Shown here: positions 1 to 58,510 of the stretch, piece by piece
Numbering within the stretch: the first letter of the stretch is position 1
How the letters are laid out: each line of letters starts with the position of its first letter
Assembly: GCF_006345805.1 (NCBI RefSeq)
Contig: NW_021832124.1
Coordinates: 62,001-126,000, forward strand
DNA: 64,000 nt
Direction of reading: 5' to 3'
Source of the DNA: Octopus sinensis
Taxonomy: Eukaryota
Program-made: the position numbers and the translations under genes
Notes under the pieces: generated by a model
Seen by the model: only the letters and a program-made list of their open reading frames with translations
The model's database searches: none
Told to the model about the DNA's origin: nothing

Positions 1-3000
1 TGTTCGGTTTTTTTTAATTTTTCATAACATTTTTAGACGAAAATATTCGCTTCCTGAGGAGACTGGTATTCCAGTAAGTCCGTTCTGTCAGTTTTAGGAA
101 AATAAACGATGGAATAAACTCACACAGGCGTTTTCCGAACTTGATTTTACTGAAAATGAACAAAACTCAATCACGGCAGTTCTCGCTGCAGTCTACCATT
201 TGCACATTGCAATCAACAGCGACTTTTCTCTCGATTTTTTGAACAAGGTGGCTTCATGTTTTGAAACAAATACACAAGTCCTTATCGGCTTAGTCAGTCA
301 GTTTGTTTTGTTGTTTTAACGTAGAAATAATAAACGGAATGTCCCAGAATCAGAGCTATGGAAGTCTCTACTGGCAGCTCTGTATCACAACCTTGTGGAG
401 TCCGTGGTAAGTCTGATCAACAGGTGGGGTATCCGCGGTTATAAAAGGTCGATTTCACCTGTCGAGAATGTCTCCAGTTCTATCCACGTGCTCTACTCTC
501 CTGGAATCAACACATTTGATGGGCCCGTCCAGAATCTTCATTCTTTATTCCTGGCTTATTTCCATGAGAAAATAAACCAAATTCACTACAATTTGGTCTT
601 CAAGACACCTCTTGATGTATATGAAAAAGTATATACATATATATATATTTTTAGGAACAAATTGATGTGGACGGGTTCTATGTTCAGTCAACTGCTGAGG
701 AGGCTGTGAGTACTTTCGAGAATAGAAGTAATTCAGAGGAAGGAGGTGGACAAAACGGGGAAAAGGGAATCCTTCAATTGTTAGATCAGAGTCTGAGAAA
801 TAAAAATTCGGGAGAAGATTTAGTAAAGGATATTCTAAATATTAATAAATGTAATGATATTTTGATTTTGTAGTCAATCCTGTCATAAGGAGCGGATCTG
901 ATTCTCAGTCCTTCATATTCCTCCATTCGAATGGGATGCTGCCAGTGGAGTATGACTGCTCCCAGTGGCCAAATCAAGTTGTAAGTCTTGCGTTATTCAT
1001 CAAAGTCAAGACTCGTTTAATAAATTCAAATATGTGAGAATATTAATTGATTTTTTAGAGATTTATTTAATAAGAATTTATTCAAAAATTTGTCTCTTTT
1101 GATGAATACTCCCGGATATAGACTGGAGAGGACAGTCGTAAGGATATTCATATTATTGTGCAGAATAATACGATCGGGGGCATTCTGTTGACGGATGTCT
1201 CGTTTGTTTACACTGTGTGCCCTGTCATTGAATTGGATACCCCTTGGATTGCAGGACATAACCTGGCCGTATCCACATCCTCTGTGTCTTCGGGGACTAG
1301 TTTAAATGAGTTATTCGACGTTGCATTTGTCAGATTGCAGTTAAGAGCAATGTTAGTACTACAAGTGACACGATTATTCCGTTATGGTACGATTGGTATA
1401 ATAATGGAAGGATATCCTGACTATGTGAGTGTAGGTGACTTTATTCAGTCATATTCCATCCTTTTGGGGATAGAGGGGACCAACATTGAGATCATCACTG
1501 GAATAATGGAGACAGGACATGTGGAGGCTCACGATTATGCAATCGGCATTGATCGGGTCTTTATGAAGGACGGTGTCCTTAGTCGACTAAATGAATTCCG
1601 TGATCGTCTAATAACGGATTATATGATATCATTTCAAAGCAAAGTTCGGTCATATATATCAAAAATGACATTTCGGAGAATGCAGGTGAAGTTGAGACAA
1701 TTTTTAAGGACAGAATGTGTTTTCTTGTGTGCAGACAATCCAACACAACCTGAGGCTTTATCTGGGACTTAAACAGTGGCGGTGGTGGCAGCTGTATGTC
1801 GGACTGCTTCCTTTGGCTTCCGTTTCCGGCATTGACGCTCCAATTCGAGCACTTAAAGAAAAATTGGAACGAACTGAGCTGATTCTCTCAGAGAAGAATT
1901 TTGTTGTTGAACAAATGAAAGAAAAAGTTGTAAATGTGTCATATTCCCCAGATAGAAGCACTCACTAAGGAAATGATGGACGATAAAATAAATTTGAGCG
2001 AGGCGGGTGACGTAATTGAAAATGCAATTGAGGATAATGTGGCTCTAACAGAGAAACTGAGACTTTGTGAGGTTGTTTTTTGCAGGCATGTGCAGGAGAG
2101 GCTGGCGGCTGGGGGAGTGTTGGTAGAGGACGTTGACATGAGTGTGGAGATTGGGAGACTGCGGTCTCGGGTGGAAGAACTGGACAGAATGGTAGAACAG
2201 AAGAACGGGACAATCGAGTATTGGAAGAGGAAGACGAGTGCTCAGGGACTTGAAAAATTGGATTTAAAAAGACAGGCATCAATAAGGTCAGGTCCTTCAG
2301 AGTAAGGTCCCTTCTATTTATTTTGGAGTATTTCTGACCTTGTTTCTCTGAAGAATGAGCTACAAGAGTCCAAAACAGCGCGGGAAAGTCGGATTCGGGA
2401 TTTAGAAGCACAATTGGAGGATTATTCTGAAATGAGTCAGAAAATGTTGGTTTTACAACAAGTAAGCGATAAAACTGATATAAAGCACTGCCATAACCTG
2501 GAGAGGGAGCTGTCTGAGTATAAAATGAGAGAAATGAGATTGAATGATGAAATGGAGGACAAATTGAGGGCCCTTAAGAAGGAAATGACACTCAAATGTG
2601 AGGACCTTGATTATAAGTTGGAATGCGAGCAGAAAAATAACCGAAAGTTGAGTCTATCTAACAGAGAATTAAAATCAGAGTTATCAAAAACAAATGTACA
2701 TGCCAGTTCTTCCTCAAATGGTATGAAGTGCTCATAATGTGTCAAAGAGGTTGAAGAACTCAAAAGAAAGGTCTTTAAATTGCGAGTTTTGCTTAAAGAG
2801 GCACAAAAACAAAAGACGGTGACTGTCAGGGATGATTCTGCAGTTTACCGACTTGAACGTCAGGTGAAATGAAATGAGTAGATTGGCAGTTGGAGGATGT
2901 CGAGGTCACTTTGCGGGCCACTAATAGAGCAAAGGCAGATTTAGTTGGAGAACTGACAGAGTTGAGGATATTGGCGGACAACTACAAGAAAGGAAGGGAG

Positions 3001-3818
3001 GAGGTTGAAATGACAGAATGATGGTCTTAGATGGAAACAAGATTAAGACAATCACTTAGGACTGTCACAGAAAGTGAAATATTGGCTGAGGAAAGAGAAA
3101 CTCAAATTGAAACTCTTCAACGTGCTGTTAAAAATGCTCAGTTTGAGGTAATGTGTTATTTTAGTATTAAAGGGGTCAATTTTGACAGAGACATTGGCTG
3201 TTCGAGAGACGGAGATATTGGACTGCAAAAAACAAGTCACAGAACTCAAAGAAAGGGTGACTAGAGGGGTCCCTTAGTCCACAGATCGCTCAAATGGAGA
3301 CTGAGAATTCAAAGTTAGTGGAGACTCAAGTTGCTGATAATAAATCTGTGCTTCTCCAGGGAATGGAACTGAAATATGAGTTATGTGAGTCACAGAGAGC
3401 TCGTTTGCACGTTAGATGAATGTGTTATAATTCCAAGACACATTTAAAGACAGCACGTGAAGAATTGGCACGGATGAAGAAAGAATTTGAGGAGAATTCA
3501 CTCGAGAATATTCAGTTTAGAGATGACCTTCATTCGACGAAACTTGTAGTCAAGGCTGGAGAGAAGGAGAGGGAAGCATTGCAGGATGAAGTGGAAATGT
3601 TGACCAGTAAAATGATAAGACTGGTTTTTAATTATTGGACTTATTTTTAGAAAAGAGAGAATGAGTCAATTGAGAGTATATGTAAGGATTTAAGGGAGGA
3701 GAATTATGTTTTGGGGACAAGGCTGGATGACTTGCAAAAGTCTATTATTAATGAGATTGAGGACGGTGAGTCTTATTCTGATAGTCACGTTTCCGACCAA
3801 GATATTGATGAATTATAA
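1..3818 (+). CDS. MYO18: Myosin XVIII-like heavy chain (5' end outside window): divergent motor C-half, IQ motif, long coiled-coil tail; many micro-introns
   Basis: Peptides align with MYO18: LQLRAMLVLQVTRLFRYG..EGYPDY (cf. LRTQLRG..RMYRQGYPDH), IGIDRVFMKDGVLSRLNEFRD (cf. [21 protein letters not shown]), IQ-like FQSKVRSYISK, KQWRWWQLY (cf. DWPWWKLF), then Glu/Lys-rich heptad exons to TAA 3816-3818. Confidence 0.75.
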
Positions 3819-4303
3819 TGTTTACTATTTATACTATTTCATTTTATATTTTACTGTTAATTTATACGAGAATCTTAAGTAGCGTTACTAGAGGTCTAAC
3901 GATGGTAGAAGAGGTCAAGGACATGTAAATGGGTCAGAAAAAAGTTGATGTTAAAAAAGTTTTCAATACTGGTAGAGCAATTGCCGGTTACTTGAAGAAT
4001 TTTTGACAGCCAGATTGCTTTTAGGAATCTCATTCTTAGACATATATTTTTATTTGCTGGAGCATGGCTATTGTGCTCTGACAAGTACACTGAGACAAAC
4101 TCGGAAAATAAATATGCTACTAAAGTATAAGGCTCTTTTACTCACTACAATGAGGTAATACAGGAAAGTCGCCAGGTAAAAATGACCATCATTATTAATT
4201 AATAAAATTCATCATTCTTTTCAAAAATAGTTTAATAATCAAATTAATAAAGTAACCTGGATAACTTGGTTGTTATATCGAGTGATAATTTAAAAAACAG
4301 AAA

Positions 4304-5882
4304 ATGAATGAAAAATTAAAAATCTGGCTCCGTCCCCAACTTTTTGAATTTGGAGTATTGAGGACTAGACCGAATTCTAGACTTTCAATAAACGTAATTT
4401 TGCACGTTTAAACTCACAGAACGTCAATAAAATAGCTAAATATTTACGAGATAAAGAGGAAGCATATCCCCTGATGAGGTACCCCTGTCACTTACAGACT
4501 AGTTACTCCACGTGGCGATATTTAGCTTGTAAAAAACTTTCGTTGGATCAGGATTATGCCTGGATGTGAATTTTGGGTAATCAATTTTAGGTTTTTTCGA
4601 TTTTATCAACTATTTGGAGCTAAAAACCTAAAAAGAGTTCAACGCGAAGATCGACTATTCCAAAACAGTAAATTTTCAGTAAAATTTAGCCAGGAAATGA
4701 AAGTGGCAATTCGATCACAATAAACGGACTAAAATTCTGCATATTCTTATTCATTCAGAGCATCACTCTTCTCGAACACACACAAAGTATTACATTATAC
4801 AATTTTTCAGATCTGAAGGTGCCGTTCAGAATGACTCAGTCAACGTCAAACGAGTTTTTTAAATGTTTTATTAAAAAAGAATTTGACAGAAGGGTCCCAG
4901 TTGAGGTTTATTTTGAATGAAATGGACGCTTTGTTAGATATCATCTCAAAAGGTATTTTTCTAAAAGACTATTCCAGGAACTGAAATAGATTGGGGAGGC
5001 ATAGAGGCACTCTCATTTCTAATTGAAGGAGTGAATGGAAAGGAGTATATATTATATATATTTAATAGACATATAACTTTACTATCAAATATTCTGGAAA
5101 GGAATAGTGAATTCTCAGAAGAGGCCGGAAGGGAGTCAAATGGGAACTTTAATAAAAAAACATTCATCAAATTTTTGAAAAAATATTTAGTTAAATGTCC
5201 TTTTGGTTGGGGAAACTCATTTTTCAATGGTCTGGCTTCCCCCTTAAGTAAACTATACATTTCGGAAGGTTTGTTTTATTCAAAAATGACAGACACAGTC
5301 GGCGACAAAAAATATCCACGTATCGTGGAAAATGGAAATCTTTTACCTCCCGTTGACAAATTGTGTAATCGTGTGATTACTGATCATAAAGTGCTGGTTT
5401 TTTCATATTTGAAAGATGTGACCATTGCTGAGGTAAGTTTAGTTATTTAAAATGTAGGACACTGAGAATTATTTTAACATTAAAGTAATGAAATGTCAGA
5501 ATTGTATCTTTTACTTATTGGGGCCTTTAAAGTATATTTTGTGTGTACTTTGAAGATCATTTCTTGTCGATTCTTGTCGAAATTGCACTTTTATAGTCGG
5601 ACCAGTCGAACTTGTTGCGTCTTTATGGAAATGTGACAAGACAAGTCTATCTGGACTGTTCCGTCAACTTGTCGTGAGGTATTCCCTCAACTTATTCTCA
5701 GTCAGTGTAATAGGACTCATGTCTTTCTTGGAACACCTCAAAAACCTCTTCTCATTGACAGTCCTCAAACTACACTTGCTCCACTCAATATGTACTATCA
5801 AATGCTCCCAAAACAGACTAAACAAGTCCATCTTATAATTGACCATAATTTGTGGAACGTCCCACTTATTTATGGTCTTTAA
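4304..5882 (+). CDS. TBCCD1: TBCC domain-containing protein 1 (centrosomal), multi-exon
   Basis: Spliced translation MNEKLKIWLRPQLFEFGVL..KIAKYLRDKEEAYPLMSYSTWRYLACKKLSLDQDYAWMFF and C-terminal CNRTHVFLGTPQKPLLIDSPQTTLAPLNMYY..NLWNVPL match TBCCD1 (YWSTWRHIACGKLQLAKDLAWLYF; TFAPFHTHY..NYWDNPM). GT-AG introns of 22-26 nt. Confidence 0.85.
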
Positions 5883-5899
5883 TCTTTTAATGAATATTA

Positions 5900-6100
5900 G
5901 ATCCCTTTAATCGTACTCCTTCTCAAGAATTTGTGATTCTTCCTCCAACAGAATTTTACCAACATAAAATACCTTTTCTTGGATATAACACGACTAGTGT
6001 AATTGACTAGTTTGTGACTGTAGTTGCCACGAGAACTGATCCCTGAGGAATACCACCGAGAGTTGATTAGTCGGAAAAATCAAAATGAAAAGTTCAGAAT
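5900..6100 (-). mobile_element. Decayed LINE reverse-transcriptase remnant
   Basis: Minus strand reads GIPQGSVL (RT motif), then degenerates. Confidence 0.4.
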
Positions 6101-8064
6101 GATGATAAGCGATTTTAACTTGACTACAGCACAGAACGAACGGTTCAATCAGCTCATGTCGTCTGAATTTGATGTTTTGTTATTAACGTCATGATTGGCA
6201 GGAATGGCTGGCTTTTTCATATAATGAACGACAGGTCACGCAATTAAAGCAAATCCCAGCAACTAATGTGTCTTAATAGTCCACATTAAGGCATTTGATT
6301 GCTTTTATTATGACTTTTTTAAAAATGTTAAAGTGCTAAATCAACAATGTATGAATGATCCATAGCCTGTGGTTTTATTGGCATTAATATATATACCAAG
6401 TCCTTTAAGATAATAGAGTGCTTTATGTCGACGTGAAACTATTTATCACCACACTTATCAATGTCAAGACCAAGTACGAATATACTATAAGACTATTCTT
6501 ATCACTTACCTAGAACAATGCTTATAAATTAACCAGTCATTCTAAACAGTTCAGTTCCTAACAATATTAAGTACCTCTTAAGTACTTCTTTAATCAAAGT
6601 ATTTATCGACAATATATTTTTAAACTACTTACACCGCGTTTATATGTTGAAACAAATCAAAAAATCATATTCCTAATGGACTCAAAAAGAATGTGATGGA
6701 TCTGACTAATAGAGTGTCAGCTGGATTAATAATTGCCTCATTTTTCACAATTAAGAGTTGGCGCATGTGTTTATAATTTTACATAATTTTGAGAATTGGA
6801 TAATATTTACTCAATAATTAAAATGAGTAAACAAATAGATCCTGTTGACATTGTTAGCGATAAATCGCGAAAGATAACGTTAATTAGATCAAGGGCCTGA
6901 TAAATGCTCTAATTGCTTTAAATAAGCCCATTTATTGTAGACAGATGTAATTTTCAAGTTATGAAAATTATCATAATCTGAAGCAGTTGTAATAGCAGAC
7001 ATTTCGTGATAATCCGATTCAAATGAGAATTTTGTATCAAAGGAATTTTGCACTTTTATTATTCCATTACAATAAATGTACAGAATAATCTAATTAATTT
7101 AATTCGGCACACACTTCAAGGTTTCGAAATTTAGATTAATTATGGCAATTGAAAATTAAGCTTGCCAGATGGCTACTTTCAAGTTTTAATTGTTTGTACT
7201 AAAAATGTGTCCTTTGTGCTTATTTTCTATTTATTGAAAAGAGAAAAATTCCATACGACGTTATATTATTATTTCGTGGGAAAAATGTCAAGAATGTATG
7301 AGAAATGCGAATATTTAGTAACATTTAATTGAAGTAAATACAGTTAATTAGAAACGGACTAAAAATAGTTTTCATTGCTATTATTTGCTAATTAAAACTC
7401 TTGGATGTACAGTTAATTAAATTACGCTATTATATTGGTTTGTTAAGCCTCCCTAGTGAATGTAATGACCTCCGCAATGTCACAATTTTATAGGTTAATA
7501 ATTTAATTATGGCATTCCGACACTCAGTCATAAGAATAAACAATAAATAAGCCGCCAAAGGCAAATTTTAGAGCAATACAAATTACGTGTTGCCGATCGC
7601 CCGCTGACACCTCTCAATATAATCATGATTTATATTGTCTGATCTAAATCTTGCATTAACAGGGCCTCATCAGCGAGAAAGAAACATATATAACATACTG
7701 TATTGCAGTTTTTAAATTCCATACAACAGCTGGTGCCTTGCTATGCTAGTGCTGCTGCAATTTGAATAGCATTCTTCAATTCACTTGACAATGCCGTCCA
7801 TACGCGCTGTTTAATTTGCTTATTAACTCCTCCCCTCCGCAACGGAATGTTATTATTGTTGTAAGTGCTCTATCTTATCGCCTTTATCTACAATTTATAT
7901 AAAGTATATGCCATTCTAATTTATATCCTATTCAATTTCAATGGCCAGACTTATTCATTCTGTGCTTTCCTGGTAGATAATTAAGTTCTCTTCACATAAG
8001 ACGATAGTTAGTTAAAAATGAAAGTTGTGCGTGTGGTTGCTAAGTGCCAGCTGAGCATAAATGA

Positions 8065-9045
8065 ATGGCATATTCTCTAGCGTATAATAATTGTATTATA
8101 CTTTGGATTACATTTAATATAGGTTGTTTTATGTCCTGTCACACCACTTCTAATGACGACAAATTTGTCCCCCCTAATAGTCGTATAACTGTAACTCGGA
8201 GTCCAGAAAATAAATTCAAGTGCCAGAATATGTATGAACGGTATGACTATTCTCCAAATTCATACAATTACTATTATTGTGAACCTGGATTTGAAACCTT
8301 TTCAACCCATCCTGAGACACCTCACGTGACTCTTCCTCCCCTTACTTCATATCTACAACAAAAAAGCAACAAGGAGGTTGAAAATTGTTACAACAATCCC
8401 CTGAGCATAACTCAAGACTATGATTATGGAAACTATGTGTCATATCCAGATCTGAATCAGTTCAATAATGAAACATTTTTAAGTAGCTATCCTGCCACAC
8501 AAGAGAATCATGTTTCTACATTTGTTCGTAGTCAACTTGGACTTAGCAAAGTTTGTAATGACGACTCAGGGTCACGGATAATCTCCCATGGTCCTCAAGG
8601 TCGTAGAGATCTAACAGTGAGGTCCCGATCTAAGCAATTTCCTTCTAATCGGAATATGGATAGTTCAAGTAGCCTGGACAAGTCATCTCCTTTGGACACT
8701 TTTGATAATTTAATAAACATGAAAATGAAGACTTTTAAGCATACAAGTAAGTTATGGCCATAATTTGTAGATAATAACTTTACTGGGGGACAATCAGCAG
8801 GTTCCCAGACCACTAAAGTCAGCTCAATACATTTAATCGAGCAATGGAAAAGAGAAAGAGAAATTTTACAAAAATTATTCCCTGAGAGCGATTCAAACAT
8901 GTCCCTCAATCCAAATCTTGAAAATTTTGCACGAGAGATACGTGGAGATGTATTATATCATTATTACGTAATATAATAGGGCGGTGTAGATGTGAGTTCA
9001 AAGAAGCGGAGATTGGAATTTGACTATGACGATGCCAATTTATGA
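8065..9045 (+). CDS. Orphan Tyr/Asn/Ser-rich protein, 3 exons, C-terminal SKKRRLEF
   Basis: 232-codon ORF continues through a 24-nt intron (8748-8771) and a 29-nt intron to TGA 9043-9045 in frame. The true start may be the second Met (MSCH..). Confidence 0.6.
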
Positions 9046-10027: not shown

Positions 10028-11093
10028 TTATTTAAAACAAAATTTAAAGATATCCTTTAATTCAGTTTTTTTCAATTCCAGAATTGACAATTCCGACATA
10101 ATCTCAGTTTCAAATGAACTATCCATGACTCTCAAACGTTTAAAATCCTCCAAACAATCATCCACGTTACACAGCCGACAGTGAGCAGATCCCCGGTAAA
10201 ACAGTGCAGTGGAGTCATCTCGATCAAAGCCCAATATTTCCGTACACCGTTTGACCACCAAGTGAAAATTTTGTTCTTCAAAACAGCAGCGAATCGAAAT
10301 TTTCAGAAATTCAATTTTTTCTCTTTGTAGCTGACAATAATCGTAGGAATCCTTCATTTCTCTAAAATTAATAATCTTCGACACCTCAAAATTGCACTTT
10401 CAAGAGTATCGATTGAAAATTCACATTTTTCAGAAGCCTTCTTTAAATTGTTCGATAAAAGTAAATTTTTGACTTCTTTTTTGATTTCTGGAAGCAATTT
10501 AAGTCTTTCTTCAATAGAAGACAACAAAGACAGTTCAGCGAACCCGTCTTTATCATTCGGAATTATCAGATCAACGAAATCTACCCTTAAAATCACAATT
10601 TTTACCGAAAACAAAGATCAAAGATTGCGGTTCATCACGAATTCGATCAAGGTCGTCGAACCCCGTTGACTTGTGGAGAATACCAGAACAACATGTTTTT
10701 GATAAAATAGAATTTGAACTGATTTGTCGAATATTTACAGAAAAAAACGCATATTCGACAGAAATCTTTAAAAATTAGCATTTTTTGTGCATTACGGGAG
10801 AAGGGAATGTAAATTCTGCAATTTCACCAATTTTCATTGATTTGATGCACGTTTCCCAATGTTCAAAATTAAACTTGCGGTCAATTAAAAGTTCGAATGG
10901 TTGGTCGCTCATCTTTCTAAAGTCATCCACGACTTCTCTGTCCTCTGTAAGAGTCCTGAAATAAAATTTGGCCTGTGTAGACAGGATTTTGGGGTACTTT
11001 GCTATTTTTTGTAAAAGTTGGATGATCACCCCTACCAGGATGTATTATTCGTTTGATTATGTTATTTTTGGCCAATCTGATAATGTGTTCCAT
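10028..11093 (-). CDS. AIP: AH receptor-interacting protein (FKBP-type domain plus TPR repeats)
   Basis: MEHIIRLAKNNIIKRIIHPGRGDHPTFTKNSK|AKFYFRTL..QPFELLIDRKFNFEHWETCIKSMKIGEIAEF matches the AIP N-terminus; TPR exon with ALFYRGSAH at the C-terminus. Confidence 0.9.
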
Positions 11094-11997: not shown

Positions 11998-12529
11998 ATG
12001 TCTTATGAACCTAATTCAAAACCGGTTATTCTAACGAAAAAAGCTCCAAACATGTCTCAACTAAAAAATAAAAATGTAGACCTTAATTAATTAACATATT
12101 TTAGAACATTCGTCTGGCAGAAATGCAAGGAATCCAAGTCTCGACGGCCCTTAAAAGTCTTTTATAATTTACAACATTTTAGAGGGCAGCTCAAAAAACA
12201 AACAACGAATAAACGACTCTGAAGCTTATAAAATAGAGAACAGCGAAACCGAGAAAATCGAAGTAATTTCCACAGAAATTGGCAGAGCAGTAAAAGATGC
12301 AAGAAATGCCCGAAATTGGACCCAAAAGGACCTCGCAATGGTATTTTTGTTGTATTCGTTTTAGAAAATTAACGAAAAGGTTCAGGTCATTGCCGAAGTG
12401 GAAATGTCCAAGGCAGTTAAAAACCAGCAGCTGATATCAAAGCTTGAACGTGCTTTTGGTGTTCTTTGATGTTTGAGGAATGTAGGAATTCATCTTCAAG
12501 GAGTTAAAGCTGGGAAGCCCTTTAAATAA
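11998..12529 (+). CDS. EDF1: Multiprotein bridging factor 1 / EDF1, 5 exons
   Basis: IGRAVKDARNARNWTQKDLAM|KINEKVQVIAEVE..QQLISKLERAF|GIHLQG matches the MBF1 HTH region. Introns of 24-29 nt. Confidence 0.9.
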
Positions 12530-12576
12530 TTCTTTCATTTTTGATAGTTGTTTTAATAATTAATTTGATCTAACAA

Positions 12577-18280: not shown

Positions 18281-18289
18281 TTGAGAAAA

Positions 18290-29158: not shown

Positions 29159-30579
<1,421 letters not shown>

Positions 30580-41367: not shown

Positions 41368-41641
41368 ATACTATTGTTATGTAGGTAACCAGTTAAAAAT
41401 GCTTAATTAATTAAAATATAAATTATTAAAATAATAAAACAAAAAAATTAGGTGATAATTAAAGAATTATTAATTCGTTCGTTCTGTCTTCCATTGCCAA
41501 CTTTTAAATGTAGTTCCACAAATCATTATTTAATAAAAAAATTAATTATATTTAAAATTCAAATAAATTTACGTGCAATGTGAGTCATTTTTTATAACAA
41601 ATTTTAAACATTGATTTAATAAATAAATTTAAAGTGATTTT

Positions 41642-43546
41642 ATGAAAAATGCATACTCCTTCGCTCTCCGACCTGATTCGGTTTATATTCCCCAATCTGA
41701 CCCCCAGGATACCATCGAACGCCTAAAACTACTCCCCGACTTCCCACTAGACACCAACCTCAAAATAGCCGACGTCCTCCAGGAAGAATTCCTCAACCAA
41801 ATGATCGAACAAAATAACCAATTCCTCCAAAATTACTCCACAGTAGTCCAAGTAAACCACAAATAACACCAAAGAATGTAAACTACTGCTATTCTGTCAT
41901 CTCCCACATGACAGAGCAGTGCAGTCACGTGCAATCACACATCCAAGTCTGCAAAGACAGCACCCACGAAATGATCAGCAAAGATAAATATCTTCACAAC
42001 AGAAGGTGTGTTTTCTAGTTATTTCAGATCATCAATTCTAACACAATCCGCCGACATTGCTCAGGCACTCACTCTGTATTTGTTGTCCGCGGAAGAAGAG
42101 GCTCATATTTATTCCACCAGTCTGGAAAGTCACGTTTTTTCCGTGGTTGAGAAATTGGAGACTATTCTTGGGAAGGTTACGGAATTGGACTCCTCTTCTT
42201 TAAAAACAGAATTGGAGGACCTGGCCAAGTCCCAACTGAAGACTGTGTGTGGAGGAATCAACCAAGGAGTGGAAGGTTTGGAGGATTTGATCACACAGAT
42301 GTTCTACGACTCCCCCAACTGAGTGAAGAGACTGGCCTGAGGACTGCTTTGAATATTCTGAGACGAAATGGAGAGGAAAGGAATTGTGAGAAAATAGTCC
42401 AAATAAGAAGAGAACAAGTTCTGGCAGACTTTGTGAGGACATCCGAGAGGGGAATCGAGGACCTTCTCCACTGGGTGGTGACTATGGTGAAGAACGAGGT
42501 CTCCTTGGCTGGAATATATGCCAAATGTTGTCCGGATGTGCTCAATCGAGTGGTGGAGAGTGTAGTCCAGCCAGTCAAGGTGGCTGAGTTGGATATTTGT
42601 AGGATAAAGTCGAACAAGTCATTTTTTCGGCTGATATGACTCGATTGAGGGGAATGTACTCTCGTTTGAAGGATGTGGTGACTCAAATTGACGTTGATTT
42701 GTCCGCGGAGAACGGTCGGGTTTTTATATTCGTCCTCGTTTTCCGTGAATTGGTGGAAACAACGAGAAACGTAGTCTACAATTGTCTGATTCACAAATGC
42801 AACATGTTTATGACCTCCGTGTAGTTAAATTGGTCATATTCAGTCCACGGGAACCAGTTCTTCCTCCAGAACTTGAAAATATTGTCGCGGTTTTCCGTGA
42901 AATTACCGACGGGGAGGTTTGTGGTGGTGGGGAGTCTCCAATGTCGCGGAAATTGTTGGAGACTGCCCTCAATGTGTGTTCCGTGATCAGTTCTCGACAG
43001 AATGAAGTGGTGAGTGCTGTTTATTCCGTTAATTTCCACTCCGCGATATTACCAGTGTCGCGGAATTGTCCTTCCATGACGGAGAAAATGTCAGAATTGG
43101 TATAATTGGTTGGTTAACCCTCTGATTGCACGTGGGGTGGATAAATTGGCTGCCATTCAGGCAGTTCTGGTCTTGGATTCGTCTAAACTGAACATTTTGC
43201 GGAGAATTATGCAGGGAGAGAGTTCGGATTGGTCAGAGAATGTTATTTCTGACTGTTATGTATTGTCTTCTGTTGATTTGGGTAGAAAAACATGCAAAAT
43301 ATACTCAAAAAATACTCCAATTTTACTCATCCTGAGTTTTGCTTGATAAATGACAGAGGAATATGGTTGGGTAGAAGACATGCAGTTTGTAGGTTAAAAT
43401 GTATGAGACTATCGTTGGAGATTGTTTGGGGAGTGTATGACGAGGTTTATCGCGGTCTTTCTTCCGTTGAACATTCTACCGCGGAATTTCTTCCCCTCAC
43501 TCTCACAGAAATGGAGAAAATGGCTGGCTATTTTGTTGATGTTTAA
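41642..43546 (+). CDS. COG6: Conserved oligomeric Golgi complex subunit 6-like, multi-exon
   Basis: IVQIRREQVLADF..IEDLLHWV..VESVVQPVK|DKVEQVI (cf. TARRSTVVRGF..VGDMLAWL..TEGVCRPLKVRIEQVI); introns of 22-27 nt. Confidence 0.7.
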
Positions 43547-44354
43547 TAAAATTATGTTTTCTTGACTAAGTATAGTTTTCAATATTTTAGTTTTGTTAGT
43601 TTTATTATTTTAATAAATATAATAGGATAAAAATTCAGATCGTTGTTGTGTGGATTATGTCTTCTAGTACTCAGAGATGTAGTTTTGTGTGTAGTAATCA
43701 TAGTTGTGCAGTTTATTAAGAATGGTCTGTATGACTACCCTGTACTAGGACTGACTGCTTTTCTAACATTAAGTGGTAGTTATGCTTGTTAGGACAACAT
43801 TTGTAGGCCTTACTGGACTGCTGGCTGACCAATATAGATTGAACAGTCGTCCAGGCAGGAAAGGTCGTTACAGCAATCGCTACAGAGGTCTTTGATCATA
43901 TTCATTCTTCAGTCATCAGAGAGGAGGATCTACCTCCAAACTACGACCCACATGACTATAACTAACATTTAATTTATATAAATAAAATCACGTTCAACAC
44001 TCGTATGACAATTTTGTTTTTGAGGTTAGTCAGGTAATGTGGCATGCCGAGTCAATAAAATTGTCATATTATTCGAAAGGGGTTTAAAGAAGAGTGTTCT
44101 TTTGGACTTTTGATTTAAATATTGGTGTTCAATTTATAAAAATATTTTTTTAGAAAAGATCCAAATAAAAGCTATTAGTAAAAATAGTAAATAGAAAGTG
44201 GCTGGCTAGCTGATGGTTTGAGACGCTGTGAATTGAGTTTGCGATGTTTCGGACTGACGGCAGGCTGGCCCTGCCCGTAGGGTTTTATACCCGCTTCAAA
44301 TAAGGAAAATGGGGAGGGCGGATTTTTTTAATAAACTATTCAAATTAAACTCGC

Positions 44355-44690
44355 TTATCTGGGACGCAACTTGCATGCACACATTCTCCGCGGGAAACAT
44401 CTTTACGTCAGCCGCAAAGTCAATAAATATCATTATATCTTTGTCCCGATCGGAGTGAGACGTCGTGACTCCTCGGTCCCAGAACTAAAAAATTCCTTAT
44501 TAAATTTGGGAACCTGGCAAGCAGAAGGAGAAACGATCATCGAGAACGGACATGACTTTTCCACGCATATCAATAGCCATCTTGCGTGGGAATTCCGATT
44601 AAATTCCTTACGAAAACTGTTCCCCGTCCGTTCCGAGCTTGCGTTGGGTCCAAAGTCCAACATCGTGAAAAGCTGAGAAAAATTTTGAGG
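44355..44690 (+). mobile_element. Degenerate CRE-like 3' fragment
   Basis: WDA.CTH, YIFVPIG.ETS, KKFLIKFG..DHRER, with frameshifts. Confidence 0.6.
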
Positions 44691-44880
44691 ATTGTTGGAA
44701 TCGCCTAATTAATTACTCTAATTAACTGTTGGTGATTCTTGGGTTAAATCAAAAAAATTGCCACTCTGCTGCTAATTAAATATTTATCAACACTTTTTGA
44801 TTAACCAACATTAAGTAACACCCTAGCAGTAAATTAAATAACTTGTATGTCTGAATAAAAATAAGACGCAAAGTAAAAAA

Positions 44881-45991
44881 TCATTTGATAGACTTATCGA
44901 GAGCATCACTGCAGAACGAATCACCCGCCCATGATTTTTTTTTGGAGTAAGGCCCACGTCTTTTAGGAATCGGAACATCAGTCTCCCCCGGAATAAGAAA
45001 AGGCCTCGGCGGATTCCCCGAAATAGAACAAGTCATCTTTCTCCGTTTACACAAAACCTGTCTTTTAGGCGAAGGCGTGCATTTCGACAAAGCCACTCGC
45101 CTAGGAGTCACCGGCGACGACCTCGGAGACGAAAATGGAGGCTCACTAACAACATCCTCCACGGAATCTACCCCTAACCACACCACACTACCCTTGTCCC
45201 TTATTCCAAGAATATCGTTGAGGATCCTCTCGTTCCCAATAGCATCCATTATATCCTGCATGCAGTAGTCCGGACGAAAACTCTCATCCACCACCGTGGT
45301 AAAACGGGAATTCGACAACTCCTCTCCGCGGACCACCGATTTCCGAGGTCGTAGATTCCTGTCACTCACTTATATGTAAAATCACTTTCTTCTAGACTCA
45401 ACAACCTTCGGCTGTACATCAAATGTGTCCGTGTCGACGAAAAACGGAGAAGACTGATTTAAACTGACTTTTTCCCGTTGTTTAAAAATCCTTCCGTCAA
45501 TTCCAAACCCAAACCCGAATGGAGTCGGACTGACAGGCTTTTCTGGTTTATCTTCAGTCTTCTTTATAGGAATATCAGTTTGTATTTTTCTCGAAATGAC
45601 TTCCATTCCATCTGTCTGTACTTCCCGTGAAAAAACACGAAGATTCTCGCCATTTTGTGTTTCTCGGGATATTTTCTGTGGCTGAGAAATATTGCTGTCG
45701 TCTGTGTTTAGTCGGGCTGGGTTTATGTGGAGTATTACTTATATGATGTTGGCAATATGTGTCCATCACTTGACGTAGTGTTAGTCCCAGCATTTGTGAG
45801 CCTGATTGTCTTCGGGAACTTCCATAAAGACGGTATTCTGAGAGGGAGGCTGATTCGTGTAGGAGAGAATCTGCGGTCTCCAACAGGCCGTGGTCGTAGA
45901 GGTAGCCTGGTGGTGACATTTGGGGGATACCCAGGATTAGTCGGGCTTCTTCTGAGGGTAAGAAGTGGATTTGGGATTCGTCGTTGGACAT
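44881..45991 (-). CDS. NPAT: NPAT/Mxc-like protein (N-terminal LisH), 4 exons, about 345 aa
   Basis: After removing a 24-nt intron: LPSEEARLILGYLYDHGLLETADSLLHESASLSEY (cf. NPAT LPSDVARLVLGYLQQENLISTCQTFILESSDLKEY). Introns of 22 and 27 nt join the remaining ORFs; S/T-P clusters. Confidence 0.65.
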
Positions 45992-46156
45992 TATTTATAT
46001 TCGCCCACAAGAAAGTAAGAATTCGTTGGGTAAATTTATATAAAATTGACTTAATTTATTTATAATTTAATTGATGTAAATTTAATTAAAAATAATTGAA
46101 TAAATATGATTTATAAAAGCGGGAAATATATATTGTTATAGTGTGGACACAATAAA

Positions 46157-46831
46157 ATGATTTCAAACAAGCAAAAATACTGTTTTTCATCTCCAAAGAA
46201 GGAGATACCAGCAAATCCCCAGCCTTCCGTGGACATCTTCCACCCATCAACAGTCCCACCCAACAATTCTTCCTTCAAAGTGAAACGAAGCCCTTATCCT
46301 CCCAGATTTATAAATTAGAACAAATTTTGAATCAAAGGAAAATAGAATTGGCCAATCTGATATCCTCCAATAACATTTTAGAAGAAGAACTAAACATTCT
46401 AGCCAGATCACATCATATTCTCGACCAAAGTGAATCACATCCATCCCATTTTAGAGTTAGAACGACTAACCAAGCAAAAAATAGACACAAAAATCAATTT
46501 AGAGAACGAAAAAGCAAATTTCAATTTAATAAAACAGTCTATTTAATCATAAACTCTCAGACAAGCCAATTATACCCCACAAAACACAGAAAAACTCAAA
46601 AAACAAGCCAAAATAAGTCAAAAAAATGACCAAAACAAGCTGAGGATAGCAGTCCAAGAATCTGAGAGAGAACTACAGCAATCCAGACAGAGAGTAATGC
46701 CTCTAATCTCACTGGCAGTTGAGGATAGCCAGAGAAATGTTAAGAAAAGAACAAATTGGGTTGGAAATTGATAAGGTTTTTTTATTTCTATTTTTTGGCA
46801 GTGTGCTGTTGTTTCAGTTATGTTTAAATAA
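46157..46831 (+). CDS. Hypothetical coiled-coil protein, 6 exons
   Basis: Frame stays open across five GT-AG introns of 24-26 nt; heptad-rich sequence (LNQRKIELANL.., LQQSRQRLRIAREML). Confidence 0.6.
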
Positions 46832-46927
46832 TGTTTAAAAATATAAAAGTTGTTATAAAAATATTTATTTTATTAATAAAAATTATTTTTATTAATAATT
46901 CAAATAACAGAACGTGGTGGTGTCATA

Positions 46928-47997
46928 ATGACAATAATAAACATTTCCTCCGAGTCTGAATTGGATAAAATAATAAACGACAACTGCATGTATTCCACCA
47001 ATCAACCTCAATCCCAGTCATTTAACCCTCCTCTATTTCTCCTCCCCAATAACTCCACAATGCCAGCAAATGCGAGAAATTCTCGTAGAACTCAGTTCAG
47101 ACCCTGTTATGTACAACCGGGCAATTGTGGAGATCCCCTCAGAAAAACTGCTTTCTCTGTCCCTTAAATACAAAATCCGAGTGGTCCCCACTATTATTTT
47201 CACCACGGTGATTTTCCGTGATTATTCCGTAGAGCGGAGTGGTTATTCACCGCATTGAGGGCTTCGAGACGTTCAAATTGGCACAGAAATTGGCAGATTT
47301 GACTAGTGTTGCTGATATTGACCTACATGTGGAAAAATCCGTAAAAAACGTACTCAATCAAACGGAAATTGTCATCGTCCTTGATTCCGGTGAAATGGAA
47401 GGTAAATTTCTCCGTGAATTCGCCATAGAAGTCCTTCGCGGAGAACTATCCCGACTAGAATTGCCGTGTTCCCAGTCGATAGTGGAATTGACCCCATTTC
47501 AGATCGCCTGTACTAAATTCCGTGATTTTGCCAGTATTTCAGACCAAAGGCCACCTCAGGGGGACATTTCCGCAAATATTCCGCGGAGGAGTCCGTCTTT
47601 GTTCTTTGGAAGGTGAAGGACTGAGAGATCAGCTGAGAAAGGCGTTGGTCCTCAGTATTGACGAACGTCTGGAGTTGTTGGTTGGAAGGGCAAAGGTCAT
47701 GCTCTTCATGAAGGGGACCCCGGATGTTCCGCGGTGTGGGTTTTCGCGGAAAACCGTGGAGTTGTTGAGATCACGGAAGTTAGATGTGTGTTGTATTGGA
47801 GGATTGATTTTGATTATTTTGATATTTTGAGTGATGAGGAAGTGAGACAGGAGTTGAAGAGATACTCCAATTGGATGACCTACCCACAGTTGTATGTGCA
47901 GTCTAAACTGGTGGGAGGACTTGACGTTATTCAGGTTGTTGGTTTTGTCCGTTATTTTTAGGAGTTGATTGACAACGACGAGTTTTTGGTTGATTGA
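46928..47997 (+). CDS. GLRX3: Glutaredoxin-3 (Trx plus two Grx domains, first degenerate)
   Basis: Trx-like PQCQQM..VPTI..RIEG; Grx [50 protein letters not shown]. Confidence 0.9.
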
Positions 47998-48796
47998 TTT
48001 GCTTTTTTTGTTTCTTTTCCCTGAGAGGGCCTGTTTTAAGACACACTGGTCTTTAAGGGCAGGCACATTTCTTTTTTCTTTTTAGGGTCTTTTTATAAGA
48101 TGTTATAAAAGTGTTTATTTATTGGCTAAAAAGTACTTAAAAGAACGTATTGTTACTTAAACGAAGGACCCGTCGTGTTCCGTTAATGAAGAAAATACAC
48201 ATTTCTGGATAAACTAGATGTGTTATTTAAATAAAGAAAATGAATCTATAAAAAATATTTTATGGTTGGAATAGAAGAGATCCGATATATTGAAGATTAA
48301 TTAGCAATGATAGTCTATTAGATGAATCGGGACCAGAAGTTTAGTCCGGTTTCAAAGGAATTCCTGTATAGCGAATAGTCGATTTAAAGGGATTTGACTG
48401 TATGTGGTAAAAACCACAGATATGTTTTACATTTGAATTAAAGACTACTTTAAAACATTCTCAATTTTGACCTACGTGTGATCATCCCACTATGTATGTC
48501 GATCATAATAGAAATAGTCCGGGAATTCTTCTAATATACATTTTTATTACTAATTCAAATCTCATCAATGTTTTTAATAAGACTTTCAAATTTAGTCCAG
48601 CAGTCGTCTCCGGGAGGGAATTTGCGAAAATGTCGGGGTATTTAAGATCCCATACAAAAGACCTGCCTCCATGGAAAAAAATGTAGTCATTCCATCTTGG
48701 TGTTGATGGAAAACAGAGAGACCTTTAAGAGACATCGTTAAAGGACAAGTGTCGAGGCATTCTGTCGTTGTTCACCGAATAGAAAATTAATTCGGA

Positions 48797-49283
48797 ATGT
48801 CAGATAGATCGGAAAAATCAGGATTAACTCGCGAATCTTTTGAGAAAGTAAATCCATGAAACAAAAATTCAGGAAAAACAAAAATTCAACTGTAAAAAAG
48901 CCCACGAACTCCTCGAATGGATCAAGAATTTAATAGACGGTCAATTCTCTACTTGGAAAAAGTCCATTTAATCTGACAACTGGCGAACAATTTCAAATTG
49001 TAGATGTCTTCGAGCAACAAGGACTTTGAAGTGTTTTGAATACCATAAAAACCATTGGGAGAAAAGTCAGTCCAAATAAATTATGTTTCAGGCTCATGCA
49101 GTCAATAAAGGATTTGGTCCCAAAGAATCGCGCAAAAATACTCGAAATTTCACAGAGCAGCAGCTGAAGGAGGCCGAAAATACCCCTGGCTTGATGAGTG
49201 GTCATTATAATACTCCCTGCACACCTCAAACCCATAAAAGACGTGATATTGGAACATATACCCAAAAACCAGGAAATAATTGA
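48797..49283 (+). pseudogene. Myophilin/transgelin copy with most of the CH domain deleted and an internal TGA
   Basis: MSDRSEKSGL..LLEWIK, FQIVDVFE, LGRK-like IGRK, GPKESRKNTRNFTEQQL; two micro-introns retained. Confidence 0.7.
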
Positions 49284-49363
49284 CATTAATTTGATTTTAA
49301 CTAATTGAAGTGGATTTATTTAATAATTGAATCCCGTATAATCATCATCAATGTGGCTGAAGA

Positions 49364-49660
49364 ATGAAAATAACTCTCCTTGAAAAGAAGGGCTATTCTA
49401 TATTTGCAGGATATAAATTTTTTAATGGTCAACGAAAAAAGTGTAACCACTGTAAAAATAAGGGGATGACCGTTGACTATTTAGCGACTAAGTGCAAAAA
49501 TATGATGTACCATGATTACACATGGAGACACAGGTGCCACCATTTTCTGCTCTGCAATAAATATGCTTTGAGGCGGTCCAGAAAGTTGCGAACTTGTCGA
49601 GTTCAATCTGTGTGTGAGAACTCGAATGTGTGGATTAAGGTAGATAATGAGTTTTTGAAG
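49364..49660 (+). mobile_element. R4/NeSL-like C-terminal zinc knuckle fragment
   Basis: CNHC..TVDYLATKC..YTWRH..LCNKY..SVCENSNVWI. Confidence 0.6.
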
Positions 49661-50076
49661 CTCTTCAGGGGCATATTTTATGAGCTCTGCATTAACATTA
49701 TCTGGATCTGGAGCTTTTGACTTGTTTAGTCTGGTCACAGATTTTTTAACTTCCGTTAAAGTAATTTCTTGTGATAACTTTCTGGGCGCTCCATTGAAAA
49801 GATAAAGCGTTTCTTCGTTTTCAAAATTAAAATATTTTTCAAAGTGGTCGGCTATAGTGTCTGTGCGTTCCTGGTTGTTGTAAATGGTTCTTTCGAGTTC
49901 ATCATCAACTGTTAGGTTTTCAGATTTCTTCTATCGCGCTAGCATCTTTACAGATGCATACATTTGCGCTTTGTGTTTGTACTTTCTCAATTCATTTACA
50001 AGGTTTTGTAACTCTGTTTCCTAATTTTTCGGTTTTCGGTAAGCATTAAGTGCCTCCTGAACGTTTCCATATCCGA
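49650..50076 (-). mobile_element. RTE-like LINE fragment
   Basis: ITLTEVKKSVTRLNKSKAPDPDNVNAELIKY; upstream 40-nt segment shared with the SINE at 52055-52093. Confidence 0.7.
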
Positions 50077-55060: not shown

Positions 55061-55160
55061 CTCGTTGCCTCGCGGGCAGGGGAACGATAACGAGAATTAA
55101 CCCAGCTGAAAACTGGCCTCCTTCAGATTCGAACCCAGGACTGTCCAGATCCATTATCCT
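55060..55160 (-). mobile_element. Second, divergent SINE head
   Basis: ggataatggatctggacagtcctgggttcgaatctgaaggaggcc resembles the 52330 SINE head. Confidence 0.55.
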
Positions 55161-56060: not shown

Positions 56061-57502
56061 ATGACGGATAAACAAATCCTTTCACTTTTCAGAACATGGG
56101 ACGAAGGCAGTGCAATAAAGAGAACAACTATTCTTAAAAAATTTATTTTGGAATGTTTCGACAAGAACGGCTCTGAGTTAGAAAACTATTTTAAAATGGG
56201 CGATTTACTTTTTTTCAACCGCATCACTTCCTGGTTGCGACTAAAGTGACTTTTATATTCTAATAGTAGTTATATAATCGGGTCCGATTTGAGGACTCAA
56301 CTTGAAGCCCTAAAAATATTCATAACTGCGTCATGTGGGTTGCTTTTCTCAAATTAGATCCAGACATAAATATATGTCAGAATTCGTCCAAGTTGGCGGA
56401 ATTCCGATTCTCCTGGAAATCCTGTCTTTGAATCATCTTCCGGAATTAGTCAAAACAATCTCACTGCAAATATTGGAGGGCATTGGACTGTACGGAAATG
56501 AATACAAAAACATGATTTGTGAATCACACGGTGAGTCCCCCGACTTATACAGGAATCCGAATCATCTCCGAATGTCTCAATTGGGCAAACAGAACTAAAT
56601 CCTGTCATACGTGTGCTCGTCTTCTCCTCAGTCTTTCAAACACAAACGAACAAAACCTTATCAATGTCTACAAGTCACTCATCGCTCTTCTCAACTCATC
56701 CCACGCCCTCACAGTTCAGTTATCAGCAAATGCACTACAACAACTTGTGGTTGGTCCCCTGTTGTGTCCCAGCCTTCTATATTTTTTATTCCCAGTCAGA
56801 TTGTCTCCAATGCGATCGCTGCTCTCAAATCTCTTCATTTGGAGATTCAATTTGAAGGTTTTTTACGACGGAATTTTGGCAGTGTCACAACTGTTGAAAC
56901 AGTTGGCAGATTACGAAAATTACAGAAACGAGATTTTCGATTCGATTATCGAATTGTTGGTCAAAGAAAGCAACATAAAAAAGATTTTCCAAACCGGTAT
57001 TCCACAAAAAAGTCATCATCGTAGAACACGTGTCAGAAAACGAGTCGGTCCCTGTCTACATTCAAATGTCTGCCATTTGCAAGTTGCTGAGGTGATTAGT
57101 CGTTTTGAGACTTGAGGGCATTTATGGAACAAGACCCAAACAGAGTGGATTTGTTTGTAAAGGTTGATATGAAATATTGAGTTGAAATAGAACGGCCTTC
57201 TATATGGCCTTATGAATTCGATTGGCAACTGTGATTGCTGGAAACTGCAGAAAGAGGCTGCTTACTGCATTCGAGTAAGAAATTGTGTATAAATTTAGTT
57301 TTTATGTGAACAATCAGAGCAGATCGAAACAATTGTAGAAAAATGTATTGGGGAAATATTATATTCTATGATTATTGTATTTTGAATTGCACATTTATAG
57401 AACGAAACGGACAACTTTTATGCACATTTGACTGAAGTACATCTGGAAGTGTTTAGATCGTCAGGAATGAAGCTTATGACCCAACAAAAAATAATTATTT
57501 AG
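56061..57502 (+). CDS. ARMH1: Armadillo-like helical domain-containing protein 1
   Basis: WDEGSAIKRTTILKKFI..ELE..LFFNRITSWLRL, EFVQVGGIPILLEIL, YKNMICESHG, VYKSLIALL match ARMH1. Confidence 0.9.
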
Positions 57503-57620
57503 AAAATACATTTTTAACATAACACTTTGTACAAAAAATGCTTTAAAATAACCAAAAATTAAAAATCCAATTTTATAAACACAAGAAAAAACACATTTAT
57601 AAATAGAATTAGAAATAAAA

Positions 57621-58510
57621 TCAGCGTCTAAACCCACACAAATGACACGTCCACTTACCTAGAGAATGAAATACATCAAAAACCATCAGGAGGTTGGAGG
57701 AGTGCCGGTCTAAGACAATACATGTGATACCCCCGGTCACAATCATCACAAAACAACAACTTATCCTGCACATTCACACCCCCAACATACATCATTGTCC
57801 GACGTCCCACACACAGTACACGACTTACACTCAATGCACTGCCAGGAATACGTTTTTATGACCCCCACCATGTGATCCGCAAAATTGAGACAACTCGGAT
57901 GACCTACCTTCATTACTCACCCTAACCAGATCTCCTGCAATTACAACACGTCAAAAGTTCCTCGGCCTTCCCAGAACGGCTGGTCGTCGTCCCGAGACAA
58001 AAATCGCAGTAAAGTCCCCCTTCTTCCTCAGTTCGGTATTTGGTCCTCACAGGGACTACTCTTTTCGGTCTCTTTCTGCTTGAGAACTCCTCCGAGTCGT
58101 CCGAGTCTAAAGAAGGACTTTCCTCCTCACTCGACGACTCCTTCAAGGGACGTGACTCCTTTTCTACCCCGGTGGCTGGAGATGACTGATGTGGGGTACC
58201 ATCCACGTGCACGAAGGTTTCAGTTTGGAGAGTAGGAGGTAGTCGGCTGTATTTGGAGGGTTTATATTGGATGGTTCCGTCTTGTTCGGAACTGAGGACG
58301 TCCTTTTTGGTTTTCCAGATAGCACTGTCATATTGGTATACGCAGGTAAGTCGGTCAAAAAAGGGCAGGCGGGATTCACGGTCCTCAAGCAATTTTGAAT
58401 TGAAGTGACTGACGGATTTTATGCCTTCTTTGTATAATTTGTTGTCCTGAAAGGTCAATTGGAAAGGCAGGATTTCCTACAAAAAATCAACACACAACAA
58501 CGTCCTCCAT
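57621..58510 (-). CDS. DPF2: d4/DPF family BAF subunit (Requiem domain plus double PHD)
   Basis: [17 protein letters not shown]; [45 protein letters not shown]. Confidence 0.9.

Follow-up and report, generated by a model that had tools for sequence, protein, structure and literature searches.

Sense-strand composition turns from C/A-rich to G/T-rich about 460 nt into most genes of a 64-kb, probably dicyemid, DNA window

In most genes of a 64-kb stretch of DNA deposited as Octopus sinensis (positions 62001-126000 of the 303-kb contig VCDQ01000438.1, assembly GCA_006345805.1; hereafter the window), the sense strand is C/A-rich over the first ~300-500 nt and G/T-rich thereafter. One rule covers genes of both orientations, namely that the sense strand begins C/A-rich at its 5' end and finishes G/T-rich at its 3' end. 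The flip is present at neutral sites, is anchored to the 5' end of the gene, and is accompanied by upstream and downstream flanks that are not mirror images of each other.

Sequence and gene models

The window has a G+C content of 35.9% over its whole 64 kb and contains compact genes with GT...AG introns of ~19-32 nt, AT-rich spacers of 100-300 bp and interspersed transposon debris. The introns of 19-32 nt, the G+C content of 36% and the tiny AT-rich spacers are hallmarks suggesting that the window is probably DNA of a dicyemid parasite carried in the assembly of its host octopus. The genome of Dicyema japonicum has a G+C content of 36.7% and contains 49% repeats (PMC6736024).

Gene models were built by chaining open reading frames (ORFs) over short GT...AG introns with a dynamic programme, named by Pfam and trimmed by hand. 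The sample is this one window, with 14 complete genes and one long gene cut by its left edge. The 15 modelled host genes are the edge-cut gene, TBCCD1, two unnamed genes, and genes for an EDF1-like protein, an FMR1-like KH-domain protein, Rpc34, RPN7, beta-tubulin, COG6, an NPAT-like protein, a short unnamed protein, glutaredoxin-3, DUF5578 and DPF. ORF chaining over-extends into spacers and creates some spurious introns of 19-20 nt, hence the trimming by hand; the FMR1-like model still lacks the intron at 16679. The models hold some errors but can be relied on for strand, extent and reading frame over long exons. Another 20 ORFs gave no match in Pfam scans, so that the unnamed genes stay nameless and the name NPAT stays unconfirmed, and a 3249-residue concatenated query of window proteins had no match in a protein search.

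A skew flip within most genes

Strand composition was expressed as the keto-minus-amino skew (KM), (G+T-A-C)/N, and an annotation-free scan compared the 400 nt to the left and to the right of each position, with a jump threshold of |z|>=4 and 20-nt block shuffles as the null. The scan revealed 11 upward and 9 downward jumps, compared with 0.66 and 0.77, respectively, expected from the shuffles (shuffle maximum 4). A preliminary description of this DNA had reported, from hand counts, that each gene has a C/A-rich left half and a G/T-rich right half; the flip is real by the scan (~0.7 jumps of each sign in shuffles), all eight of the 60-nt hand counts are exact, and both quoted introns are present in the FMR1-like gene (16679 and 17568). 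Of the 11 upward jumps, nine are in curated genes at 190-800 nt from the ATG, and one of the other two, outside such genes, lies in a fragment resembling a long interspersed nuclear element (LINE). All nine downward jumps occur at gene borders next to AT-rich stretches or spacers, as the preliminary description had it for the resets, one of them (z=-6.6) in the 165-bp spacer that follows the NPAT-like gene.

Tested gene by gene, 11 of the 14 complete genes have an upward change point that is significant at p<0.05, and seven have one at p<0.01; TBCCD1, the unnamed gene at 8065-8990 and RPN7 have none. The skew pattern holds, then, for most host genes in the window and not for all. In pooled profiles, the first 300 nt have a GC skew of -0.15 to -0.18, and the value rises to +0.30 at 100-200 nt before the stop codon. 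When the window was cut by AT-rich spacers alone, the pattern was blurred, because such units mix genes and transposon debris. Chance was ruled out as a cause by the change-point tests and the shuffle-calibrated scan, and an assembly or sequencing artefact by the reading frames, which are unbroken over the flips.

Neutral sites and protein composition

Neutral sites were defined as 4-fold degenerate sites plus intron interiors, and the first 400 nt were compared with the zone beyond 600 nt in the 14 complete genes pooled. The G:C counts were 142:246 in the first zone and 304:224 in the second (Fisher p=4e-10), and the T:A counts were 307:358 and 481:341 (p=2.5e-6). Expressed as base fractions, G was 0.135 versus 0.234 for C in the first 400 nt, while beyond 600 nt G was 0.225 versus 0.166 for C and T was 0.356 versus 0.253 for A; the purine fraction was constant (0.475 and 0.478). 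The shift is purely on the keto/amino axis, G moving with T and C with A at constant purine content, which is what strand-asymmetric transitions (C to T and A to G on one strand) would give.

Bootstrapping over whole genes gave a GC-skew shift at neutral sites of +0.42 (95% confidence interval (CI) 0.16-0.65) and a TA-skew shift of +0.25 (95% CI 0.11-0.37), the latter from -0.08 to +0.17. The shift was positive in 13 of the 14 genes (sign test p=0.0009), with single-gene skews at neutral sites ranging from -0.7 to +0.4; the preliminary description had proposed a check for positional skew at neutral sites and, run within the window only, it finds that skew present. At 4-fold sites alone, G:C was 87:173 near the start and 224:174 later (p=1.2e-8), and GC skew changed from -0.33 to +0.15. 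Introns within 400 nt of the ATG had a mean KM of -0.07 (n=20), compared with +0.21 for later introns (n=30; p=0.013). In the 14 genes pooled, the shift is seen at all three codon positions and is greatest at the third.

Its presence at 4-fold sites and in introns means that the cause works at the level of DNA or RNA, not of protein. Protein composition changes along with it: residues whose codon stems (first two bases) consist only of A/C fell from 31.7% to 25.1% and those with G/T-only stems rose from 15.5% to 22.6% (p=2e-10), and beyond 600 nt P, H, T, S, Q and N are depleted and C, V, W and G enriched (Fisher p=2e-10). Amino-acid usage follows the base skew passively, silent sites and short introns being affected at least as much as constrained sites. 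The converse, in which the skew is a by-product of protein composition (disordered N-terminal versus structured C-terminal regions) or of codon-usage ramps, can point to the difference in amino-acid usage between gene starts and the rest, and to the proximity of change points to exon junctions, which often separate domains. However, the shift is largest at 4-fold sites and extends to intron interiors and the 3' flank, and the gene of beta-tubulin, a near-invariant protein, still has a C/A-rich first and a G/T-rich second intron. We consider this explanation extremely improbable, and protein composition as the sole cause is refuted by the neutral-site results. The preliminary description had likewise set protein sequence aside, rightly so given that the skew is strongest at 4-fold sites and present in introns.

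Position and shape of the flip

The preliminary description is right that, on the + strand, genes start C-rich whichever way they are oriented, and yet this is uninformative. A pattern of C/A followed by G/T is its own reverse complement, so that the two orientations look alike on the + strand automatically, and therefore orientation alone cannot separate a transcription-linked cause from an orientation-blind one. Three other properties do respond to orientation, namely where the flip lies, how long genes behave and how the flanks compare.

The flip is located at a median of 456 nt from the ATG (462 +/- 97 nt in the seven strongest genes). Its distance from the ATG does not scale with gene length: the slope was 0.03 +/- 0.20 for the 11 genes with p<0.05 and -0.002 +/- 0.11 for the seven strongest, where a mid-gene flip predicts 0.5, and a constant-distance model had a root-mean-square error of 224 versus 301 for a half-length model. 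The flip falls at 19% of the length of COG6 (1.9 kb) and at 78% of that of a 612-nt gene. The order of C/A then G/T in the preliminary description thus stands, whereas its "halves" are loose, the C/A-rich part being ~300-500 nt at any gene length. KM was +0.20 in the 100 nt past the stop codon and +0.02 in the 100 nt before the ATG (mirror-symmetry test, gene-level t=5.6, p=8.5e-5). GC skew was +0.17 and TA skew +0.21 in the first 100 nt past the stop, and GC skew was +0.11 in the 100 nt upstream of the ATG. Together, flip location, long genes and unequal flanks are orientation-aware and favour a property of the transcription unit, comprising a local 5' zone and a global sense-strand G/T excess, over a symmetric process acting on gene-sized DNA.

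The preliminary description had proposed a process of the latter kind, a full-gene symmetric flip requiring gene-sized units of replication or breakage. Such an orientation-blind process could consist of breaks in the AT-rich spacers with 5'-to-3' resection from them and deamination in the resulting 3' overhangs, of an origin inside each unit, or of gene-sized amplification. Its polarity would fit, since a break on the left would expose the minus strand and a break on the right the plus strand, giving C/A on the left and G/T on the right. The upward jump has the sign of a replication origin, all nine downward jumps lie at AT-rich spacers, the flip is near the middle in genes of ~1 kb, and skew along the keto/amino axis is the mark classically left by exposed single strands (PMC10030826). 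Nevertheless, a flip ~460 nt from the ATG without scaling to unit length, between flanks that are not mirror images, speaks against the symmetric scheme. COG6 and the long edge-cut gene are G/T-rich for 1.5-3.8 kb, past plausible resection tracts; the profile, in which GC skew is still climbing towards the stop, has the form of a square wave rather than the N-shape of replication origins; AT-rich stretches bounded by repeats give no reset; and the genes are linked on one 303-kb contig. Genome rearrangement and circular DNAs have been reported in dicyemids (PMC6543705), and the preliminary description had cited the circles in support of gene-sized amplification; the reported Dicyema circles, however, are of 600-800 bp and are non-coding or mitochondrial-like rather than nuclear gene units (PMC6543705). 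A process on gene-sized units is, in our view, a distinctly unlikely explanation.

The C/A-rich zone starts sharply at the ATG in ATG-aligned profiles, and in stop-aligned profiles GC skew climbs to +0.30 shortly before the stop. The change itself is step-like: introns 1 and 2 of COG6, only 130 nt apart, differ in KM from -0.89 to +0.56. In spliced coding sequence, an exon junction is no more than 15 nt away from five of the eight strong change points, compared with 1.25 expected (p=0.003), in a post hoc comparison on home-made models. Flip points are often at intron positions, e.g. 12339, 16949, 22097, 29342, 42005 and 47585. A k-mer search around the flip points revealed no common motif above shuffles.

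These features bear on selection on nascent or mature RNA, under which scarcity of G and abundance of C/A in the first 300-500 nt would leave the 5' transcript unstructured or free of R-loops, or C-rich starts and C-poor ends would tune the speed of RNA polymerase II under limiting cytidine triphosphate (CTP). The abrupt beginning at the ATG, with the 100 nt upstream neutral, and the step-like flip between the first two introns of COG6 are consistent with such selection, as is the skew of introns, which belong to the nascent RNA; an adaptive hypothesis is already in the literature for fungi (PMC3315797). On the other hand, avoidance of G or of C alone does not predict a parallel A/T flip at constant purine content, and an effect that is equal or stronger at the least constrained sites and alters protein composition resembles a pressure rather than a design. 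A zone of 300-500 nt also far exceeds the known effects of RNA structure on translation initiation. Selection on RNA therefore appears unlikely to us as the cause.

Individual genes

Among the genes with the clearest flips, COG6 (41642-43545, +; Pfam COG6_N) has its change point 363 nt from the ATG (~42005; KM from -0.34 to +0.13, p=0.0005). Its sense strand is C/A-rich for ~360 nt and then G/T-rich for 1.5 kb, and neutral KM goes from -0.70 over the first 300 nt to about +0.2 over the remainder. The sole match in a protein search with COG6 was a chimeric "Octopus sinensis" model on the same contig. This NCBI model, "glutaredoxin-3-like [Octopus sinensis]" (42797-49283), combines COG6 exons, glutaredoxin-3 exons and downstream pieces, i.e., at least three real genes, and presumably arose from an annotation pipeline that did not expect introns of <30 nt. 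The glutaredoxin-3-like gene itself (46927-48000, +; Pfam Glutaredoxin) flips at ~47585-47721 (KM from -0.08 to +0.29, p=0.0005) and is followed by a downward reset at 48126.

Between these two lie the NPAT-like gene (44884-45994, -), an ORF chain without a Pfam match, whose flip is at ~45519, 475 nt from the ATG (KM from -0.24 to +0.14, p=0.0005; neutral shift +0.49), and a short unnamed gene of 612 nt (46159-46770, +). They are separated by the divergent 165-bp AT-rich spacer (45995-46158), where the + strand resets from G/T-rich to C/A-rich with the strongest downward jump of the window (z=-6.6 at 46088) at a local GC content of 0.16. The 612-nt gene is C/A-rich nearly throughout and flips only ~480 nt in (p=0.04; z=+5.0 at 46639), which argues for a fixed 5' distance and not for a mid-gene flip.

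The flip of the FMR1-like KH-domain gene (16440-17790, +; Pfam KH_1) is located at ~16945, 509 nt from the ATG (p=0.0005), with a C/A-rich intron at 16679 and a G/T-rich one at 17568. The gene of the RNA polymerase III subunit Rpc34 (21668-22700, +; Pfam RNA_pol_Rpc34) flips at ~22090 (KM from -0.21 to +0.21, p=0.0005) and has a neutral shift of +0.71 (Fisher p=1.6e-6). The DPF (double PHD finger) gene (57640-58476, -; Pfam DPF1-3_N and PHD), modelled with a hand-corrected 31-nt intron, flips at ~57956-58020 (KM from -0.17 to +0.28, p=0.0005; z=+6.4). It is convergent with the DUF5578 gene (56061-57400, +; Pfam DUF5578), whose flip is weak and late (~57067, p=0.047). The 3' ends of the two are ~240 bp apart (57400-57640), and a sharp reset is found between them (z=-6.3 at 57470), where no promoter is expected.

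The gene at 11998-12546 (+), which we take to be EDF1/MBF1-like, flips at 12339 (p=0.0045, z=+4.7). An unnamed gene at 10029-11093 (-) has a G-rich 3' half on its sense strand (p=0.017; neutral shift +0.48, p=0.001), with a downward reset at 9801 (z=-6.3). For beta-tubulin (29159-30579, +; manual model) the change point is 183 nt from the ATG (p=0.019), and the flip is weak in the constrained coding sequence and plain in the introns (KM -0.67 in intron 1 and +0.25 in intron 2). The long gene with a coiled-coil tail (2-3790, +), which has no Pfam match and whose 5' end is beyond the window edge, is G/T-rich on the sense strand at neutral sites over its entire visible 3.8 kb (neutral KM +0.14, binomial p=0.0005).

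Two named genes depart from the pattern. TBCCD1 (4304-6290, +; Pfam TBCC), which the preliminary description had singled out as an exception, is one indeed, with no significant flip (p=0.45) and a neutral shift of only +0.10. RPN7/PCI (28272-28925, -; Pfam RPN7 and PCI) is the sole gene with a reversed neutral shift (-0.32), in a model that is uncertain. This proteasome-lid gene is seemingly short of ~170 N-terminal residues of its family, and its start is ~230 bp from the divergent start of beta-tubulin.

Transposon debris and spacers

Transposon debris makes up about half of the window and, used as an internal control, is almost devoid of the pattern. The reverse-transcriptase ORF of a transposon fragment at 40582-41283 (+; Pfam RVT_1), which has no jump in the scan, exemplifies this skew-free repeat debris. 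AT-rich stretches bounded by repeats showed no skew reset in the scan of the window. A LINE-like N-terminal reverse-transcriptase fragment (49320-50020, -) has its own upward jump at 49533; either the element is old enough to have gained the pattern or the jump reflects its native composition.

A family of ORFs of ~130 residues is present in at least five copies (18109-18259, 20464-20883, 25661-26068 (-), 31077-31472 and 62839-63369 (-)) that have no Pfam match and share a conserved end, "...F-T/I-P-I/L-A-V/F-E-T-S-G...R-G-N". It is likely to represent the C-terminal part of an abundant mobile element. Palindromic AT motifs resembling TTAATTAA are abundant in the spacers at 41290-41640 and 44700-44850.

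Proposed mechanism

The reading that fits best, to which we give about an even chance, is a transcription-linked, position-dependent and strand-asymmetric bias of mutation or repair that has accumulated in genes transcribed in the germ line. Beyond ~0.5 kb, the non-template strand would be the exposed, deamination-prone strand (C to T and A to G), as in mammals and bacteria, and in an early-elongation zone of the first 300-500 nt this asymmetry would be inverted. The phenomenon would be an exaggerated and altered form of the opposite 5' and 3' GC skews known from unicellular fungi. A bias of mutation or repair is suggested by the fact that neutral sites and the short introns (22-30 nt) are hit at least as hard as constrained sites, with amino acids dragged along. 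Three elements of this reading are inferred, namely a mutational and not a selective origin, a coupling to transcription, and transitions as the type of change. Profiles aligned on the ATG and on the stop codon resemble the several-regime picture drawn for fungi (PMC3315797).

Several points weigh against this reading. None of the standard models of transcription coupling would lead one to expect the inverted asymmetry of the first 0.5 kb, and the local 5' effect in mammals is the same in sign as the global one (PMC2927911). From composition alone, transitions and complementary transversions (A with T, C with G) look the same, and the T-richness past stop codons may stem from 3'-end signals rather than from mutation. 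In genes of ~1 kb, a flip at 460 nt is indistinguishable from a mid-gene flip, so that the case for a fixed distance leans largely on COG6, the 612-nt gene and the edge-cut long gene, among 14 complete genes in one 64-kb window, and the gene models are home-made chains of ORFs with some errors.

The inverted zone is addressed by a hybrid of breakage and transcription, in which promoter-side breaks (e.g. recombination hot spots in a nucleosome-free spacer) are followed by resection that exposes the template for a few hundred bases, while the rest of the gene undergoes transcription-associated deamination of the non-template strand. It is alone among the models considered in explaining why the template strand should be exposed near the start; the polarity and the 300-500 nt extent of the 5' zone would match a resection tract, and the global G/T excess matches a known effect of transcription (PMC10030826, PMC2927911). 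Yet the step-like edge of the 5' zone is unlike a spread of resection lengths, the convergent DUF5578 and DPF genes, promoter-less between their 3' ends, still have strong 3' skew and a sharp reset at 57470, and skews are only weak in yeasts that have strong promoter hot spots (PMC3315797). We regard the hybrid as very unlikely.

A further, very doubtful possibility is a sharply defined boundary inside the gene, at a depth of about three nucleosomes and often at an intron, where the strand exposed or repaired in the germ line switches; a possible cause would be that AT-rich spacers are programmed sites of breakage or initiation and that the genome is handled as gene-sized units. If true, this would tie the skew to the somatic rearrangements reported for dicyemids.

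Implications

If genome-wide, the pattern would be the strongest intragenic polarity of strand composition seen in an animal. A neutral-looking bias visibly reshapes protein composition along genes, which matters for the phylogenetics of the long-branch dicyemids. For gene finding, the skew marks gene starts and orientation-independent unit borders. The joint flip of A/T and G/C in dicyemids could separate two explanations open since 2011, namely mutation of the deamination type and selection by nucleotide supply. Dicyema has a published genome, a transcriptome and a heterozygosity of 1.24% (PMC6736024), so that the competing explanations are directly testable.

Comparison with known systems

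A literature search found no report of nuclear strand skew in dicyemids. The jumps at replication origins, in bacteria and in mammalian skew domains, resemble those of the window in sign, C/A giving way to G/T in the 5'-to-3' direction, and in their keto/amino axis. In contrast, the window has a period of 1-2 kb that is phased with genes, a square wave instead of an N-shape, and an orientation dependence in the flanks and long genes. Nor do the remaining properties point to origins, the jumps lying ~460 nt from start codons between asymmetric flanks (p=8.5e-5), with GC skew rising towards the stop.

In vertebrates, the 5' end of genes is G-skewed and the 3' end C-skewed, with skews of ~0.1 or less in long introns (Polak, Querfurth & Arndt 2010, PMC2927911; review PMC10030826). 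Vertebrates and the window have in common that the non-template strand carries excess G/T along transcripts, that there is a distinct local regime (the first 1-2 kb in vertebrates) and that GC skew is opposite in sign at the two gene ends (PMC2927911, PMC10030826). The non-template enrichment is found in the window beyond 600 nt and in the long edge-cut gene (KM +0.14). The local 5' regime of the window, however, is not G-skewed (neutral G 0.135 versus C 0.234 in the first 400 nt); its polarity is reversed, its amplitude is several-fold larger and its genes are of 1-2 kb (PMC2927911). Plants and some fungi have a peak of C over G at transcription start sites that spans about +/-100 bp (Fujimori et al. 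2005, PMC555766). This skew resembles that of the window in its sense-strand C excess near gene starts and its link to transcription, whereas no G/T-rich 3' counterpart has been reported for it and the zone in the window comprises 300-500 nt of coding sequence and introns (PMC555766).

The closest precedent, overlooked in the preliminary description, is that of McLean and Tirosh, who described the whole pattern of 5' C and 3' G in unicellular fungi: in most of them the coding strand is biased towards C where the gene starts and towards G where it ends, at 4-fold sites too, with shifted amino-acid usage and extension into the untranslated regions (UTRs) (PMC3315797). For fungi, where the mechanism is unknown, the authors proposed either that each phase of RNA polymerase II transcription has its own mutation regime or that elongation follows a ramp limited by CTP, and they used the flat A/T skew along fungal genes against cytosine (C-to-T) deamination (PMC3315797). 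The window genes have in common with them the coding-strand bias at both ends, its presence at 4-fold sites, the amino-acid shift (with tryptophan up at the 3' end in both) and, on the 3' side, a skew that continues in the first 100 nt past the stop codon. Unlike in fungi, TA skew flips together with GC skew (+0.25), and the 100 nt upstream of window genes are neutral, whereas the most negative skew in fungi is usually in the promoter or 5' UTR (PMC3315797). The window genes further differ in their larger amplitude, the step-like change at ~460 nt, the skew of their short introns and their origin in an animal (PMC3315797). The pattern described here is thus of a known kind, the opposite 5' and 3' skew of fungi, and what is new is the TA flip, the larger amplitude and the step-like change.

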